A stretch of 64,000 bases of DNA from Corallochytrium limacisporum Hawaii (lineage: Eukaryota > Protista > Pluriformea): assembly GCA_002811645.1 (NCBI GenBank), contig PDIP01000033.1, positions 1-64,000 on the forward strand. Direction: 5' to 3'. This document shows positions 5,327-41,054 of the stretch, in pieces (position 1 is the first letter of the stretch; each line of letters starts with the position of its first letter). The notes below the pieces were generated by a model. That model did no database searches and was not told the origin of the DNA. It saw nothing but the letters and a program-made list of their open reading frames with translations. The translations under genes were made by a program, and so were the position numbers.

Positions 5327-8300
5327 ACCCCTCCTTGATTTGCAAAGTAGAGTATTATTGAGCTTAATATTAAATGTTTGGAAATGAGTAAGAGATGTCA
5401 TTCTCAAGTGGGTAATTATTTACACCTCCGTGCAAAGTTGCGAGTGGCTTTCGGTTGCTGGGGTGGGTCTTTCAGAGGGTGGGCCCAGTGTTCGTTTGCG
5501 GTACCGAACCCGCGCAGTCAAACGGGGCGCTCATTCAATTCCAAACCATTGTAGCACACGCCAGAGCGCACGCATACCTTTTTCATGAGTTTTTCAGAAC
5601 GATAGTAACCAACTGACAAGTGCCCCCGGCCAGGCCGATCAAAATGTACGGGGCCCGTCCTCACGGTTTTGTCCAATTTCTTTTTTTTTTTCCTTTTTCG
5701 TTTAAGGTCCCAGTGAGGACAATGGCACGCGAGGCGCCCAAGATACCCCACTGTCCACAGTTGGCAGTAAGCCATGCGGTTCAATTTTGTTTTCCGAGAG
5801 CCCCACGGGGGCCTTTTTTCAGCTGGTACGCGCAACCCCCCAAACCCCCCCCCCCGAGCGAGGAGGGGCGTGTTTGATTGACTGGTACGAAAATGAGCAC
5901 TCCCACACGCGCACACTCCGGAAGGCGGTGAGAATTTGTATGTGACCCACCGCCTACTATTCCTGCAACAGTGGGGGAGTGCACGAAGACGCATCCCATC
6001 GCACGGTATGGGTGGGTATGAAGCACCCAAGCCCACACACAGTCCTCGGACAAAAGCCACTTGTATGGGCTTTCCCAGCCCTTCATTTCGGGAACAGATG
6101 AGAGAAAGAGAGACACAGAGAGGAGATGGACCGACTGCGGGCAGCGTTATGCGGGAACTGAGGGCTGTACCTGCGAATAACCCAGACCAACACCAAGACC
6201 CACCGTCGCCCACAGTTCCCCCAAAGGGCACACACACGGTTCTTACCGTGCACACCAAAGAAAGGTCCGTATGTGGAAAGTTGCCGACAGATTCAGACCG
6301 CTGTCCTTTCCCAGTTCCAAATGCGTGGACCAAATAGCGACCCCTTGACTCAGATCAGATTTATCTCCGCTTCAAACTGTGCTTTGATCGAGAAGACGGT
6401 CCGCCCACAACATTGAAGAGGCCGTTCATGCTTAGACGGGTGTCCACCATGTTCACTGACAGCTGATGCCAACGCTGTTACAGATGGGAGCGATTGATAC
6501 GCTTCGTGGAAGCCAAGATTCGTGAGACTGGTGTTCACTTCTGTGGATAACAAGGAATTGAACGCGGGTGATGTGTGCCTAAGTCTGTCATGGGGTCGGG
6601 CATATTGGTTGCTCGATGCACAGTCCTTGGCCAGCGGCGATTCTCTTGGGTCTATTGAATCGTGATGGTGTCAATATTCGTGACTCTTTCCAAGTGCCGG
6701 TTTGACAGTCCTTGGCGTGAGGCAGGAGCACGAAGAAAATTTCTTCCGGCTTGGGCGAATGTGCTGAACCTGATCCTATGGTCACCACTAATACTGCGTG
6801 GGTATAGCAAGAGCCTTGGTTTCCAAATCCATCTTCGTGCCTGCCCCGTACGGGTAACATTTCCATTGTACTAGTATATGTATAACAACTTCCTCCTTGA
6901 GCCATCCAAGTCTCGTGGTCTCAACATGTGCAACAGACTGTAATACGGGGCCAACCTGGGTGTCACTGCCACAGTAATAGGTGCTGAGCGGAAGGAGAGG
7001 AATTGCATAACAGCGGGTTCGTACTTTCTGTACAGGCGGTACTACTCTTAAATACGGCAGACCCTTACCACAATAAACGTTCCCACTGTATCAAGCACAT
7101 CAAAACAATCGCCACCGTTTCGAAATGATATTGGCAAGGGTTTTCCTACCTCCACTGCTCTACCCTGTTTTCGGTAGGGTGGCTCGACCCTCACCATACT
7201 TGCATATGATAGTAAATTACTCCGCCCCGAAGACACTAAATCATCCACCCTTTCTACTCCATCTCGTACTGGTTTTCATATATTGGCCATGCCCACCCTC
7301 TGAGCTCGTCGCACATGCGCTACAACTATTATCTTGATATGACCGGCTCCGATGCTGCATGTCTGTTGCCTCCCTCGCTCTCCCTCCTCCACCCTCCTCT
7401 CTACTCCGCTTGGCAGTTCTCCTAAACCCGATCTGCCGCAACGGCAGCACAGCAGCCAACTCTAATACCCAATGTCCCTCATTTTTTCTGGTCTCATTTC
7501 ACCGTGCACCAAATTTCTTTCAAGAAAATTGAGTATCAGTAGGCGCTGTGCTCAGTCATTAGCACCAGGTATCCGCCGAGATCTACCCTAGGAAGAGGCA
7601 ATGCTAAGGGTTCCCATAGCTGGCCCTATATCGATCGTAGCTCATTGACCGGCTCTGATAATCCCCCCTTTCCATTTCCGGCCATGGCTACAGTTCACTA
7701 TAACGAATGTACCACATACTCCCGTGTGCTCCCATTCCCTCACTCCTCCGTTCCCGTCTCTTCTCAATGTTTCCCTTATAACGTTGCAATGCTCACCCTC
7801 AGCCTGGACTCAGGGTGATAGACGGGAGAGGGCTAGACGGAGGGGCCATAGGGCGTATGAGAAGTGAAAAATCAAAACAGGCCAGTCAGATAGTGTAAAC
7901 GCTAAGGAAGTAGACCACTTACCCAATTATTCAGTTGTCGCACTTACTGCCGATTTGTAGTGCGAGCATTTGGGTACAATTTTTGGAACCATTGACTTTC
8001 CAACAGGGAACCAGACATAGATGGAGAGAATCGTCTTGTCGAAAACCTCTGCGCGAGGAACACAGGCGCTAATGGGACCAGCAATTCGCAGACACTAACT
8101 ATCAATAGCTACAACGTATTCTGCGCTCACCAACAGGCCTCCTTACCCCAAGCACTATCGAACCCCGGAAGCTCCAAGCCAACATCCTCATCAAGGCTCG
8201 ATATTTCTATACCAGGGTACCGACACTTCCACCCGTCAATAAGGAGAACCTGAGTGCGAAGTCTACAGAGCTCTCAGTCGGACGTGTGGGACATCAAGTA

Positions 8301-14888: not shown

Positions 14889-17067
14889 AGTGAATGTCTT
14901 TTGCTTACTTCTCTTTTCTAAACTATTTCACTCACGCTAGTTGTGATACCCGAAAGTGGAATTCCAATAATAAGAAACATCCACTATGGTACCCAGTACT
15001 CAATGAGCCAATGGAGCTAACATTCCTTGATTCGCGACGGTTCACCTTAAGTACTCGATCGAGAACTCGAAATTCCCTTCTACTGTGGGTTTCTAGTCTC
15101 AGAAGGTTCTCCAAAACTAGACAAAGATGTATCTCCAACCACGCTCTGAACTTTCTCCCTGAGAGAACCCGAGGTATGTGTACCCTGCTCCGTCTCTTTC
15201 TCAAACAAAACTCCTGAGGTACAGAAACACTCTCATTCTATGCCCATTGTGCTCACCGTTTGTTTGGTTACAACGGCCCTGGTGATTGGTCCCCATAACG
15301 AAAACACCACCCAGGCATTCGGTGTTTGGGGAGCAACGGAGGCTTGACGGGGAGCGTTCGGGCGCGCCAAATTTTCTTACGGCCTCGTTCATTCCATTAC
15401 TCCTCCTACCCTTTCTTGTCAACTCATATCGTCTACTTTACTATTATAAATGTGTACTTTATTTTTTAAAACTATCCCCTGCGATTCGTATGTGGCTCAG
15501 GTAAGCGCTTACTCTGCACCGTTGGAGACGCAGCGGGGCGGGAAGAGGACAGGAGGTTTCCGGCGCGTTGATTGGCCGCACCACCGTTTCCACCCTGCGT
15601 CGGCTTTGAGGGCGGGGGGCATCCAGCTGCACACGCTGGAATTGAGAATTTAATGGTCCCGGTGCTTATTTTCACTGAATTTTAATACTTTTTGCACACG
15701 TTTTTAACGGAGAGTGAAACAATATCACCACGAGAAGGTCCACGTCTTGTCCCTGCTTCTGTGGAAGAAGAAAAAGATTTTTGCCAGGGGGGGGGGACTT
15801 TTGTGACAAACTTTGAGTTTTCGGGGGCATGAGTAGCAGTGGGGGAGAGGAAAAAGGGGGGGGGGACTCGGAGGAGAATTTTGCAGAGAAGGCGCAAATT
15901 AGAACCACTTCCCAACTGCAGTTATCCCTATAGCCAGTGTTCAGAGACTTACCTACAATTCCGACCTGGATTGCTGAAGGTATGGTGTAGGGCCCAGTTA
16001 GTCTGCCTTGCAGGCCTCTTATTTTTCCTGGTTGCCCATATTGCTATTTTGCCTTACTCACACAGTTTTGGCATAGCGCCGCCACGGCGGGTCACAGAGG
16101 AGCAGTAATGAGGCCGCCCTACAGTACACACAATGCATGCTCTTCGTCCGCGGTGGGGAACCCACCCACAGTCCGAATGCTTTGGACTTCGGTGGGACTG
16201 GGCCATTTTATAGTGCCCGCGGACACTCTATAGTTGTTACTTTGGAGCCGGCCTGAGTAAAGTATTCTGTACATTTATAAATGATTCAAGTTCCTGATTT
16301 AGAGTAAAATGAAAAAGACCACCAAATGCGAGGCACCGTGAACTTACTCTACCGTCGAGACTTCCCACCAATCACGGCTTGGACATTGAGGCCACTGGCT
16401 GGAGCTCCCGACCAATCATTGCTCTTCAAGAAGCCCTAAATCAAAGAGGACCGTATTTCACAAATATGAGCACTATTTTATATACGTACTTGCTTTAAAT
16501 TTACCCCTCTTTTAGGTACAGCTAGTCCGATAGAGCGATCGCAATGTTGTCTATGGGGAGGCTCCTGGCAGGAGGGAGCTGGAGCGGGGTCCCAAGCTTC
16601 GGCTTGGCTTGTGGGCGACAAAAGGAAGAGACACACACGACAGAGAAGGGGCGGGGGATGAGACCCATATTGGAATGGACACAGGAAATGGCTGCGCGCC
16701 GGGCAGACAATTCAGCAGTGTGCAAAAACTGGCTGCCAACGTAGGGCACGTACTGTCCGTTCCCGTCCGTCGGCAGAGCGGGTAGAGTCGGCCCATAGAG
16801 AGAGGGAAAGGAAGGCTGGCGTACGAGAAAGCGAGTTGGTGTCCCAAATGTGCAGGGTTCTAGAAACGCATGGACCGCTATTTGATATTGAGATCTTCGT
16901 GAATTGAAGTCAAAAGAATCTGAAGGGTTTCAATGCACATGCGATTCTCAGCACTGAGATCACGAATCCGGGATCACCAAACTGTAAGGATTTATTCATG
17001 TAAGGCGCTTCTCGGCCGGTGTCCGGCCCATTCCGCATACAGAATCAGACAGGCACATACAGTGGCC

Positions 17068-18384
17068 ATGAGCGCCAAAAAGAGAGAGCAGCTGTCGCGT
17101 TGTGGACTCAAGGAGGCCCCTGTAGCAACCCCAAAGGATGTGCGACAGTCTGCTGTGTTGGGTGCTTTAATAGCGGACGCGGCTGCGATTCCAGGGCACT
17201 GGTACTACGACCTTCAAACTTTATGGACACATTACCCGGAGAGCAGCTGGTGGAAAGAAACCACACAAAGTGATATTACAGAGTGGACTTATCAGGCAGT
17301 GGACCAGAGTAAGAGGCACCCTGACTCATGGAAATACTACAGAAAGGTCCATCCTGAGGATTACCCATATGATATCTATGGCAAAAGTGTATCATTGTAC
17401 GATGCGCCAGGAAGTCACTATCATCCATTCATTCCAGAGGGTGGAGTGACCCTGACAGCTCAAGTTGCTTTGGCTCTGCTCCGGTCACTGGTAGAGAGTA
17501 AAGGGTATGATGTAGTCAGCTATCTGCGGAAGTATTATCCCCTGTTGCTCAGTCCCGATGAACACAGGGACAGTTACGTTGAGCAAGCTCATCGCAATTT
17601 TCTCAAACGGTACTCACAAGGTATGCATCCGACGGAATGCTCCACAAGGACAGAAGCATGCATGGGTGGGGTAGCACAATGTGTGCCTCTGATGGCGTAT
17701 GGTTGCGAGTCTCAGAATGAAGGACCAGACCAGTGGGTGCCTGGGAAACAACATCTTGAACTAACTCATCTTGCACCAGACCTGGCACGAGCGAGTACAG
17801 CTGTACATCACATTTTAAAAGGTCTCCAAGGCGTTTCAGACTTTAGGGAACGTAAGGCAAAGGCAAATGAGCTTATTCGTCAGACGCTAGTTGAATTGAA
17901 CCCGGAGTTGGATGCGGAAGAGATTCATGATGAATTGGATGAGTTGCTGGAAACCACACCAAATATCAAGAAGGATTCTCTCAGATTCAAACGCATGAGC
18001 GTCTTGGGACCGGAGTGGAATAGATGATACGTGCATCTGGGCGCCTTCAATGGCGTTCTTGTACTCTGTCTGCGATATCTCAACGAAGAAGATGGCTTTG
18101 CCAAAGTGATTGTGGCCAATACTATGCATGGAGGGGACTCTACACAACGAGGAGGTTCCTTGGGTGCCATTATGGGTGCTATTTTCTTGATCAAGTTGGA
18201 CTCCAACGCAATGCAGAAACTTCTGTGCGGTGCAGAGGCCCTAACTTTGACGGAACAGCTTGAACGCATTTATGAGAACAATGGAAATTCTCTACCTCTG
18301 CGATGTCGGACCATCCCTACAGATACAGAATTCAGAGAACTGGTTCCAGAAGCACCGGAGGTCAGAGAAGAAAACGATGCGTAA
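17068..18384 (+). CDS. ADP-ribosylglycohydrolase/SelJ-family selenoprotein (438 aa, Sec at codon 320, TGA 18025-18027)
   Basis: N-terminal GALIADAAAIPGHWYYD. ORFs 16933..18027 and 18031..18384 are in frame across AGA-TGA-TAC. The family C-terminal motif ANTMHGGDSTQRGGSLGAIMGA lies after the TGA, and a SECIS follows in the 3' UTR. Confidence 0.88.
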
Positions 18385-18438
18385 AAGATATCATAGGGAA
18401 GTTCGGGGATCCTCTTTTGAGGTCTTGAATTAGCAAGA

Positions 18439-18512
18439 TCTTGCATGATGGCTCGAGCAGTAAAGAATTGCTTTCCTAAGCGAACCTGCTCCGTGGCCTG
18501 AGCAGCCCAAGA
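18439..18512 (+). promoter_or_regulatory. Eukaryotic SECIS element (type II)
   Basis: TCTTG/CAAGA lower stem; ATGA (18445-48) and TGAG (18499-18502) core; helix II GGCTCGAGCAG pairing with CTGCTCCGTGGCC; unpaired AAA at 18462-64; apical mini-stem TTGCTT-tcct-AAGCGA. Confidence 0.85.
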
Positions 18513-18966
18513 GACCCAATCCCTGTGCCACCACTTTCTCATACCTTCCATCCCTCCCACCCATCACTTGTGAGACGGTCTCACCCCACCGGCCTTCCCT
18601 CACCCCGGAGGAGGGGGGCTGCCAAAAACACCCACTTACTACACCAGTCAGTGTCCGATCGGTCTCACCCGGAACAGCAAGGTACAGGAGTGTGCACAAC
18701 TGGGTGGTTACATCAGTCCGTCATACATAATTCAACATAGATACATTCATACACGTTTCATGACACTATATTACACATATGTGTTATTCTAGACTGGCAG
18801 AAACTTGAGGATCTGGGAGATCAGGATGCACAGTAGATCGTATATACAAGAGTACATGCGACGTGAACTTAAAAGGCGACGTGTTCCGCCCGGTATATTT
18901 CGAGGCCCTTCCGTAGGTCACATCAACACACCGAGCTCACATGCAACCGCTTCCCGTCCTTTGGCC

Positions 18967-19830
18967 ATGGCCACTTGTGCCACACCGTCCCCGGTTTGCA
19001 GAGCCAGCAACACTTCCATTCCGACGGCAAACTTGTCTCATTTTGAATATCGACCGCGCTCAGCCAGCACAGTGGACCTAGATCAACATTTCCTCGACTG
19101 TGCGAACGGAGCTGTGCTGATCACAAACTTTGTGGCTTCGCCTGGCAAGGATATTGCTGTGCCACGCGATCCCGAAGACGCCGTGGACCTGGCCTCACCG
19201 GAGTCGGAAGTGGCCAGTGTGCAAGGGGAACTGTATCAGGCACCTGACGGTGTCGTCCATCTTTGCAACATGTCTGACGATGGTGAGCTCAAACGCAGTG
19301 AGTATGGGCCACAGATAAACAATAGTCACAAAGATCCGTTGCCACCGACGAAAACCTCTTCAGACCGTTCCGTAGCTCCAAGTATTGCTAACGACATTGC
19401 AGATTACGCCAGCGATCTAGAGTATGAGGTGGTGCTATGCGAACTGGAGCAGGAAGAACAACAAAACATTGACTCACTGTTGGTGCCAAAATGTAGTGAA
19501 AGCGTGTCAGTTGAAAACACCTCTCCTCAGTCAGACAAGAATGCAGAGGGCCGTCAACCGTACCCAGTACTTCCAGCGCCCGAGCCCCAAAGTTCCCCGC
19601 CGGAACAGACCTTCAAGCGTCCACAAGAAGGCACCATTGCCCTGTTTCTGGCCGGACAGAAATGTCACGAGGAAGGGATACCGCAAGTTCGTCAATGCGA
19701 AGACAAAGTGAAGGCGGTCTGGAAACAAATTGTTGATTTGTGTGAAAGGCCAAAAGTTCAGCGGCAAATCAAGCTCATGCTGCAAGAGTCACCCTATCGC
19801 AATCTCCCGAAAATCTATAAGGTGGAATAG
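18967..19830 (+). CDS. Hypothetical protein (disordered and acidic, helical C-terminus)
   Basis: Long ORF (18805..19830) with gccATGg at 18967. No family recognised. Confidence 0.6.
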   Translation: MATCATPSPVCRASNTSIPTANLSHFEYRPRSASTVDLDQHFLDCANGAVLITNFVASPGKDIAVPRDPEDAVDLASPESEVASVQGELYQAPDGVVHLCNMSDDGELKRSEYGPQINNSHKDPLPPTKTSSDRSVAPSIANDIADYASDLEYEVVLCELEQEEQQNIDSLLVPKCSESVSVENTSPQSDKNAEGRQPYPVLPAPEPQSSPPEQTFKRPQEGTIALFLAGQKCHEEGIPQVRQCEDKVKAVWKQIVDLCERPKVQRQIKLMLQESPYRNLPKIYKVE

Positions 19831-39285: not shown

Positions 39286-41054
39286 TCATCAGCGTTGCAT
39301 TCTAAATAATCAAATCAAATATAATCAAAAAATCATTAGTACCCCAAAAATTGTGATCGTTTTAGATTTTGTTGAAAAAATCAATAAATTTCGTGTCTGG
39401 CTACTGCTCAGTGGTGTGTAATTTCACGGGGTAGGTTGTGGGCAGCTGAACGGACAACTTTGGCTTTTATACTACCAATCACATCAAACGTGACATTGGA
39501 GAACTTTGAATCCTGTGGTCCATACACACATACTCTGAAACATACACTGTATGGCCCAAAGAGTTCAACGGATTGAGTATAGCGTATCAGCCATCATATT
39601 GCCTTCAAACAATCAGGAAGACACTAGGTTTTGCGGTCGCTGAGCAATCTGTGCCGTCTGATCGCGCGCGAAACCTTGTGGCGCCAAAGGGACCACCCCC
39701 CCCCTGTCCTGCCTCACACAGAAACTTGATTGATCCAATATTCTATCACGTCCGTGCACTTTCATTTCTCAAACGGGAGTCTATTTTTAAAGGAAACAAA
39801 ATGTAGGCAGTGTTCCGTTCGGCATTTATTTCCCGCACCTCCCTCCTTCCCTTCACGCCTTTTCCATGGTAGAGCGGTTGGAAAGTAGAAGTGTATTCGA
39901 AAACACACACCACTGTTAGTTCAAATCCCCGGATCTTCCGTCTTGTCATTCCAACTGCTTGCCTGTGTTGATCTACTGCTGTTGTGTTCCTCAGGGTCTT
40001 CTATGTTGTGATCCACGTCAGCTTCTGAGGCCCGCATGCTATTAACATGTTGCACGTCTAGTTCTCTGAGAATATTTGGTTACTGCAATGTCTCCCTTCA
40101 CGAAATACATACACCAGCGGCCGTGAGTTACATTACCGGAATATAGAGAACGAAATGGAATAAGCCAGAATATAGGCGTGAGATGGGAGGGAAGAAGAGA
40201 GAGCGATCAATTGATGTGGATATTTTTCTGCCAGGGACGGAATGTGCCACATAGATCAAAGTACAGGTAACACGGAATGGACCCATAATCAGTGCAGCTC
40301 TTCTCTAAAGTGAGAAAAAAATCAATCAAAGAATGGGACAGCAGAACGTCCGACGGTACCACCTCAACATTCTAGAAGCACGGCCTTCCACATCCTAACG
40401 GAGTGCAACGGATCACCTAACCATACGTAAGACGTGGGTGGGCTATTCTCTGAGTTGTGTAACACGCATGACCTACTTGTACGAACGGACCAGGTAGGGA
40501 TTACCAAGGGGAGGTAACGAAGGGATCCCGACGGTGATACATACGCAATTCTGCTGATTCATTCTGTGGCCGTTAATAAGCACCTGGTATCCACGGAATT
40601 GGCTGATCACAAGAGGTGCTCACCCCCGTACATTCACTACTGCTCCACAGCTGTAAGACGGTCAAAAGCACCGAACAATGGTACAACACGGAAACAACTA
40701 AGGACTGAAGAAGGGAACAATTTTTTTTAAGGGCGAATACAGAAAAAAGGAGTGGCCCCCTTGCGGGTACCGTTTCAAACTCCGAGGCTTTGGAATCTCA
40801 GTACACACGCACGCCGGTCGTGACCAGAGACTAGAAATAAACGTAGGACAGAGAACATGAAGGCCCGCAGGAGAAGGCAGTGTGTAGATTAGGAGTGCCG
40901 CCAACGAAAAAAGCCAATGGATTTGTGATTTCTTGCACAGTGTCCCATCAATTGTTTCCTCTTAGCTGAAACTATTCAAAACATCCGATGATTCGCGTGG
41001 GGTAGAAAGTACTAAGCTAAGGTGTACGATAGTGTTTGCAGCATCGTGAACTAG

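Follow-up and report, generated by a model that had tools for sequence, protein, structure and literature searches.

Two predicted open reading frames in the genome of Corallochytrium limacisporum follow each other in one frame and are separated only by a TGA codon, which raises the question whether this TGA terminates a short protein or is read as selenocysteine (Sec) within a longer one. The locus lies in a 64-kb stretch of DNA that was analysed as a whole (64,000 nucleotides, here called the window), and a first-pass annotation, made from the letters of the window, had proposed that it encodes a hidden selenoprotein of the ADP-ribosylglycohydrolase (ARH) family. The evidence presented here favors, with a probability of roughly 90%, a real single-exon gene for an ARH-fold protein in which the UGA at codon 320 would be decoded as Sec, directed by a SECIS element and probably aided by a hairpin.

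On the forward strand, a single frame extends from the ATG at 17068-17070 to a TAA at 18382-18384, and its sole interruption is the TGA at 18025-18027. The latter is found in the context ..GPEWNR-TGA-YVHLGAFNGVL.. and is in frame with the open reading frame at 18031-18384. The features of the locus are the following, all positions being those of the window.

17068..18384, + strand: complete coding sequence in a single exon, 438 codons including the putative Sec at codon 320, followed by TAA.
17068..18024, + strand: N-terminal 319 codons, ARH fold, with the motifs HWYY, HPDS, HYH and H.D.Y.E..HR.F, a PF03747 match and 332 homologues detected by HMMER.
18025..18027, + strand: in-frame UGA, read here as Sec; the same in sequencing runs X1 and X2, a TGA in the same loop of homologues, and Cys in the Cys-type forms.
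18026..18070, + strand: stem-loop resembling a Sec redefinition element (SRE), with a core hairpin of 7 bp (18039-18045 with 18052-18058), evaluated by shuffling and by synonymous recoding.
18028..18381, + strand: C-terminal 118 codons with the block ANTMHGGDSTQRGGSLGAIMGA; PF03747 positions 239-278 and phmmer matches to about 40 full-length homologues.
18382..18384, + strand: true stop codon TAA, from the frame analysis.
18439..18512, + strand: predicted type II SECIS element, from folds and a control-trained descriptor; resembles the SECIS of SPS2 and has no differences in run X2.

The Pfam profile PF03747 (ADP_ribosyl_GH) matched the N-terminal piece over profile positions 2-210 (E 4.4e-15; 56.5 bits against a cut-off of 26.2), and the C-terminal piece alone over positions 239-278 (E 9.4e-5; 22.7 bits). 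Since this profile is matched on either side of the UGA, the two open reading frames are two parts of one domain, and the earlier proposals that they represent one gene split by the TGA at 18025, and that a conserved C-terminal block follows the UGA, both held in this analysis, the block being located in the 118 downstream codons. The expectation that automated annotation would truncate the gene was borne out as well, because its public protein (P0001) is a product of 319 residues that is cut at the UGA; a word-index protein search with the N-terminal piece returned only this product of the gene itself. The public protein is thereby deprived of the C-terminal quarter of the fold, and the same error affects dozens of homologues from metagenomes and transcriptomes. 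Within the window, 9 of the 18 long open reading frames stop at TGA, which is the commonest stop codon there, so that the code in use is the standard one and recoding, if any, would have to be site-specific.

The TGA was checked in two public sequencing runs from two studies, designated X1 and X2. Run X1 yielded one contig of 1700 nt over 17055-18754 with zero differences, which spans the ATG, the UGA, the stop codon and the SECIS. The contig from run X2 covers 16940-19500 and contains ten substitutions and one 2-nt insertion, by which neither the TGA nor the stretch at 18439-18512 is affected; three of the substitutions fall in the coding sequence, two of them at third codon positions and one altering the poorly conserved tail. 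The downstream frame is open in both strains, with this single change in the tail. A sequencing error at the TGA, against which the first-pass annotation had cautioned, is excluded by its identity in two runs that differ at ten other sites. Both runs displayed no depth over 16000-16935 and a depth of 84-122 over the gene, a pattern that fits an RNA origin of these assembled contigs, which were taken as RNA by guess.

An exhaustive HMMER search with the N-terminal piece retrieved 332 relatives. Many full-length relatives carry the sequence A-C-Y-I about 40 residues ahead of a GGDNCHRG block; the top matches do not include the C-terminal block, and many of them stop exactly at the UGA of this gene. 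Among the best 150 representative homologues, about 30 end at the UGA column, either in [FI]-S-x-[RS] or in ..GP.WNR. Inspection of the DNA of five lineages (L014/L018, L017, L022, L023 and L024) revealed that the stop is a TGA in the same loop in all five, and that it is followed by Tyr (by Cys in one polymorphic copy) and then by a ..KY...N.N.GGD..RG..LGA block that continues to a second stop. A TGA at this loop is found in at least six lineages that share 25-40% identity, with the downstream block intact and conserved. One protein that had been considered as a WNR-ending Sec homologue (P0024) was dropped, as its contig shows a different context that probably represents an exon boundary.

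The polymorphic copy concerns the codon directly after the UGA, which is TGT (Cys) in the transcriptome copies (L014:1255-1257) and TAT (Tyr) in the genomic copy (L018:5213-5215). These genes are otherwise nearly identical, and they thus display a U-C / U-Y polymorphism beside the presumed Sec.

A maximum-likelihood tree was constructed from the N-terminal domain only, with the U column and everything after it excluded. In this tree all 30 rows with an observed or inferred Sec form one clade (SH-aLRT 95), and the distribution of the labels is explained by one state change. The Sec clade comprises at least 30 clusters at 50% identity, is characterized by the motif [FI]-S-x-[RS]-U-Y, and is sister to the 'ACYI' Cys forms, among which are bacterial-looking genes. 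Where relatives carry a name, they come from protists (Mucochytrium, Creolimax, Cafeteria and Emiliania), and the best matches include an ichthyosporean protein. Of the earlier suggestion of a separate Sec-containing branch, the part that sets this branch apart from the Cys forms is thus supported; its distinction from selenoprotein J is a different matter and is discussed below. NCBIfam contains no specific family for this subfamily, and an Atlas look-up returned generic ARH clusters only.

The Cys-type homologues have A-C-Y-I at the position where this protein has U-Y. In a profile of the Cys forms, the X at the UGA was placed on the Cys column in three of the seven Sec sequences (L017, L018 and L024) and was off by 1-2 residues in the others, the X of the present gene aligning ungapped with the Ala that precedes the Cys. 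This displacement is due to an indel in the Sec clade right after U-Y. On the basis of the shared [U/C]-Tyr dipeptide, the most sensible reading of the alignment is that U occupies the Cys column, a column that is ambiguous by 1-2 residues, and within this range the U would fall in the 'ACYI' loop of the Cys homologues, as had been claimed previously.

The genome (24.1 Mb in 286 contigs) was searched for the Sec machinery on which the first-pass annotation had made its proposal dependent, and most of it was recovered: a tRNA-Sec candidate with anticodon UCA (48.8 bits, above the Rfam cut-off), SepSecS (3e-111), eEFSec with its euk_SelB_III and eEFSec_4th domains, and an SPS2 that is itself Sec-containing (..KLKG-U-GCK..). 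The candidate for PSTK is weak, being a second KTI12-family match of 24 bits. Moreover, four further genes, encoding SPS2 (L004), GPx (L027), an Rdx family protein (L029) and DsbA (L031; ..U-P-W-C..), contain one in-frame TGA each, situated at the classical Sec position, and carry 3'-UTR SECIS elements of one common build. The core of the GPx SECIS is GUGA, not AUGA.

In the tRNA-Sec gene, the only one in the genome (L001:1501-1655; G000:C110:371719-371873), the D, anticodon (UCA), variable and T arms are well formed. The 3' acceptor strand is displaced by approximately 55 nt and has G, CCA and a T9 run behind it, and the insert that separates the T arm from the acceptor strand contains a hairpin of its own. 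ARAGORN made no call on the raw locus, and called a tRNA-SeC after removal of the insert in silico. The insert might represent an intron in a non-canonical place, or else an additional arm of the tRNA.

Beyond the true stop of the present gene, at a distance of about 60 nt and on the same strand, all elements of the full type II SECIS that the first-pass annotation had described were recognized. Helix I consists of 5 bp (18439-18443 with 18508-18512) and is followed by an internal loop, after which the core is formed by AUGA at 18445-18448 and GA at 18500-18501. Helix II comprises 4 + 6 bp (18450-18453/18495-18498 and 18455-18460/18486-18491) with a 1 x 3 internal loop, an AAA is located at 18462-18464, 13 nt past the AUGA, and an apical mini-stem of 6 bp with a tetraloop is formed by 18468-18473 paired to 18478-18483. 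The folding energy of the element is unexceptional relative to shuffled sequences (z -0.44 and -0.79), and the Rfam SECIS models left it unmatched at the gathering cut-off as well as at E <= 10. These models also miss the SPS2 SECIS of this genome and the elements of the homologues; as control elements are missed too, their silence on the candidate says little.

A SECIS descriptor was derived solely from the four control genes of this genome (SPS2, GPx, Rdx and DsbA), and it superseded a first, looser scan that had been tuned on the candidate itself. With this control-trained descriptor each control was found as the sole match in its own locus, and the 64-kb window yielded one match, at 18445 (+). 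Markov simulations gave a chance rate of 1.4 +/- 1.1 matches per 128 kb, corresponding to approximately 0.003 per given 300-nt stretch on one strand. In sequence, the candidate is very near to the SPS2 SECIS (CAUGAYGGC..AAAGAA..GCCUGAG). A MAFFT alignment of the control SECIS elements was structurally incoherent. Two SECIS-like matches of the looser scan, one at 40468 (+) in a gene-poor stretch and one at 18761 (-) just downstream of the gene on the opposite strand, fail the control-trained descriptor and are as many as expected by chance.

Among the homologues, the 3' UTRs of L014/L018, L022 and L023 each contain an AUGA or GUGA element that is plausible by eye and that falls outside the control-trained descriptor. 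The 3' UTR of one Sec-type homologue on a metagenome contig (L023:2764-3160) comprises a tandem duplication of approximately 190 nt with a GUGA-type SECIS-like stem in each copy, and its mRNA may have two SECIS elements.

The RNA directly downstream of the UGA was found to be unusually structured. The 60 nt from the UGA onwards fold at -18.1 kcal/mol (z -2.97 relative to dinucleotide shuffles), a stability that was reached by 0 of 200 shuffles. The 7-bp hairpin at 18039-18058 that had been noted near the UGA is real, and it is embedded in the longer SRE-like stem at 18026-18070. The same 7-bp hairpin is present at the same offset in L014/L018, with two compensatory pairs and three GC/GU changes, and in this comparison 100% of the cells are paired versus 33-57% when the partners are slid; L017 has a hairpin of 11 bp at nearly the same place. 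Relative to synonymous recodings, z values of -2.3 (this gene, -2.34), -0.5, -3.2, -1.3, -2.6 and -3.8 were obtained for the six Sec lineages, and of -0.6, +1.2 and -1.6 for three Cys genes. The hairpin is thus more stable than its synonymous recodings in four of the six Sec lineages (the other two being not significant) and in none of the three Cys controls. As far as can be judged from these six Sec and three Cys lineages, the data support selection for an RNA structure after the UGA, as would be expected for an SRE. Such an element in SEPN1 and other selenoprotein mRNAs was reportedly described by Howard et al. The present hairpin shares with it the position of a stem-loop a few nt 3' of a Sec UGA within the coding sequence, and differs in being predicted, from recoding tests and two compensatory pairs between two lineages. 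It would represent a case of an SRE outside the vertebrates.

In the standard eukaryotic pathway, the SECIS recruits SBP2 and eEFSec carrying Sec-tRNA. What was observed directly comprises the structure of the gene, the UGA and the coding sequence downstream of it, both conserved, the SECIS of the genome's own type and the machinery genes, and from these we infer the insertion of Sec. In the proposed mechanism, the expressed, intron-less gene at 17068-18384 (+) would give rise to an ARH-fold protein of 438 residues, in which codon 320 (UGA, 18025-18027) would be decoded as Sec under the direction of the type II SECIS in the 3' UTR (18439-18512), while the stem-loop at 18026-70 right after the UGA would probably aid the recoding as an SRE.

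Two other explanations of the UGA were considered. It could be a real stop, in which case the product would comprise 319 residues or the locus would be a pseudogene of recent origin, with a downstream frame and a SECIS-like fold that persist as remnants or arose by chance. The 319-residue product is indeed what gene callers give, the window uses TGA as a stop more often than any other codon, and the energy of the SECIS is unremarkable. These points are opposed by the recurrence of the TGA in this loop across six or more lineages of 25-40% identity with an intact conserved block behind it, by a SECIS of the genome's own type 60 nt past the second stop, and by a downstream frame that is open in two strains with a single change in the tail. 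Moreover, a product of 319 residues would lose the GGD-loop helix, a part of the ARH fold, and this explanation is considered highly improbable. Even less probable appears to be a read-through of the UGA as a standard amino acid (Cys, Trp or Arg, by a near-cognate tRNA) without Sec. It would leave unexplained the SECIS, the Sec machinery and the UGA-bearing SPS2, GPx, Rdx and DsbA genes with their SECIS elements, nor would it account for the pattern of Cys/Sec exchange across the family, despite the fact that read-through is known in eukaryotes and can be promoted by a hairpin 3' of the stop. The initial interpretation of the locus as a hidden selenoprotein is thus strengthened by the UGA that is conserved in homologues, the SECIS and the Sec machinery; judged from the sequences, Sec at codon 320 is almost certain.

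The position of the putative Sec in the protein was considered in relation to known structures. A model of a Cys-type homologue has the ARH fold (pLDDT 95.8), and the nearest solved structures are those of MJ1187, a Listeria ARH-type immunity protein, DraG and ARH3, at 14-20% identity. With DraG, ARH3 and MJ1187 (PDB 2woc, 2foz and 1t5j) the all-helical ARH fold is shared, as indicated by TM values of 0.6-0.8 for the modelled Cys homologue and profile E values of 5e-20 to 5e-5. The di-metal site of DraG is not conserved in the profile alignment: the His of HWYY is found at about the position of E28, Leu/Asn take the places of D60/D61, and D245 and T246 are exchanged for Cys and His in the subfamily and for Thr and Gln in the present gene. 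The acidic di-metal (Mg/Mn) ligands of active ARH/DraG enzymes are thus absent by profile alignment to DraG, and ADP-ribosyl hydrolase activity can therefore not be assumed.

Closer counterparts of the protein are the Cys-type 'ACYI / GGDNCHRG' proteins of bacteria and protists (P0016, P0052 and P0060), which are 25-33% identical, are predicted to have the ARH fold, and share with it the motifs DALA.P.HWYY, HPDS, G.HYH, H.DTY.E..HR.FF, LTH and GGD..RG. They differ from the present gene by a Cys in place of the UGA, by having no SECIS and, in the three that were sampled, no stable hairpin after the Cys codon, and by their place on the other side of the Sec/Cys split in the tree. The Sec/Cys column coincides with the Ala of the S-S-A-Y-I loop of DraG, just ahead of the helix that leads to the GGD loop, and in the proposed reading Sec would stand in for the Cys of the A-C-Y-I loop that precedes this metal-loop helix. 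The GGD loop of the present gene is GGDSTQRG, without the second Cys and the His that are found in most relatives; in a sampled alignment, the sequences that are without the first Cys keep the second one. As the subfamily has His/Cys in place of acidic metal ligands, the Sec/Cys would most likely be an active-site nucleophile, a redox residue or a metal ligand of a remodelled enzyme. The Sec/Cys loop, together with the His/Cys-substituted metal site, offers a concrete entry to the activity of the subfamily.

The only described selenoprotein of the ADP-ribosylglycohydrolase / J1-crystallin fold is selenoprotein J (SelJ, SELENOJ), and the present gene likewise combines Sec with the ARH fold. Both have one Sec, located in the C-terminal third, as well as a eukaryotic SECIS in the 3' UTR, Cys homologues and no known function. 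The present gene is distinguished by being intron-less in a small, intron-poor protist genome and by nearest relatives that are of protist or environmental origin, a comparison in which SelJ is represented by its description only. The Sec context of SelJ, reportedly NT-U-GLPGAF, may resemble that of the Sec clade, in that U, a few residues and P-G-A-F would parallel U-Y-N-A-V-P-G-V-L. The Sec clade as a whole, including this gene, is probably the SELENOJ family in the broad sense.

The founding description of SelJ is that of Castellano et al. 2005, as cited in PMC7539508 and PMC13134290. SelJ has been reported from ray-finned fishes, sea urchins and amphioxus, and Cys forms of it from cnidarians (PMC13134290, PMC3473315), and recent literature calls SELENOJ restricted to fishes, sea urchins and amphioxus (PMC13134290). 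Algae have also been reported to contain SELENOJ, with the Sec at the same position as in animals (PMC7539508). Apart from SelJ, a link between selenoproteins and ADP-ribosylglycohydrolases was not found in the collection of papers searched.

An alternative, which also takes the gene as a genuine selenoprotein, is that the Sec clade is not SelJ and derives from an independent Cys-to-Sec conversion in the HWYY / HYH / GGDNCHRG ARH subfamily. It would then constitute a second, independently evolved family of ARH-fold selenoproteins, with an active site remodelled by His/Cys and a Sec-redefinition hairpin that is conserved. We consider this unlikely, though well within the range of serious interpretations. 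The sister position of the Sec clade to the 'ACYI' Cys forms, bacterial-looking genes included, would agree with it, as would the protist identity of the named relatives (Mucochytrium, Creolimax, Cafeteria and Emiliania) and the described restriction of SELENOJ to fishes, sea urchins and amphioxus (PMC13134290). The report of algal SELENOJ with the animal Sec position (PMC7539508) and the abundance of the Sec clade in protist transcriptomes speak against it. Two profile searches, in each of which 8000 candidates were scored, retrieved more family members, none of them named 'selenoprotein J' and none of animal source. This outcome is in line with a second family, but the absence of animal SelJ means little at 8000 scored candidates per search. 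The possible resemblance of the Sec contexts noted above would also argue against independent families.

The more probable assignment, to SELENOJ in the broad sense, has consequences for the history of that family. Members of the Sec clade occur in what is probably a unicellular relative of animals and in numerous marine protists, which bears on the question whether SelJ arose in animals or is of older origin; if the clade is SelJ, then SelJ would be a protist enzyme of ancient date and not a crystallin-like protein restricted to animals. In terms of family size, ARH-fold selenoproteins form a large and mostly unannotated protist clade.

Two observations were made on the Cys-type members of the subfamily. 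A protein of Creolimax fragrantissima (P0003, 780 aa) contains a tandem pair of domains from this ARH subfamily, each of which is of the Cys type. In a bacterial-looking locus (L019), the gene for a Cys-type homologue overlaps by 4 nt with each of its neighbours, a short-chain dehydrogenase gene on the upstream side and a photolyase-related (DPRP) gene on the downstream side, and these genes may provide a clue to the function of the subfamily.
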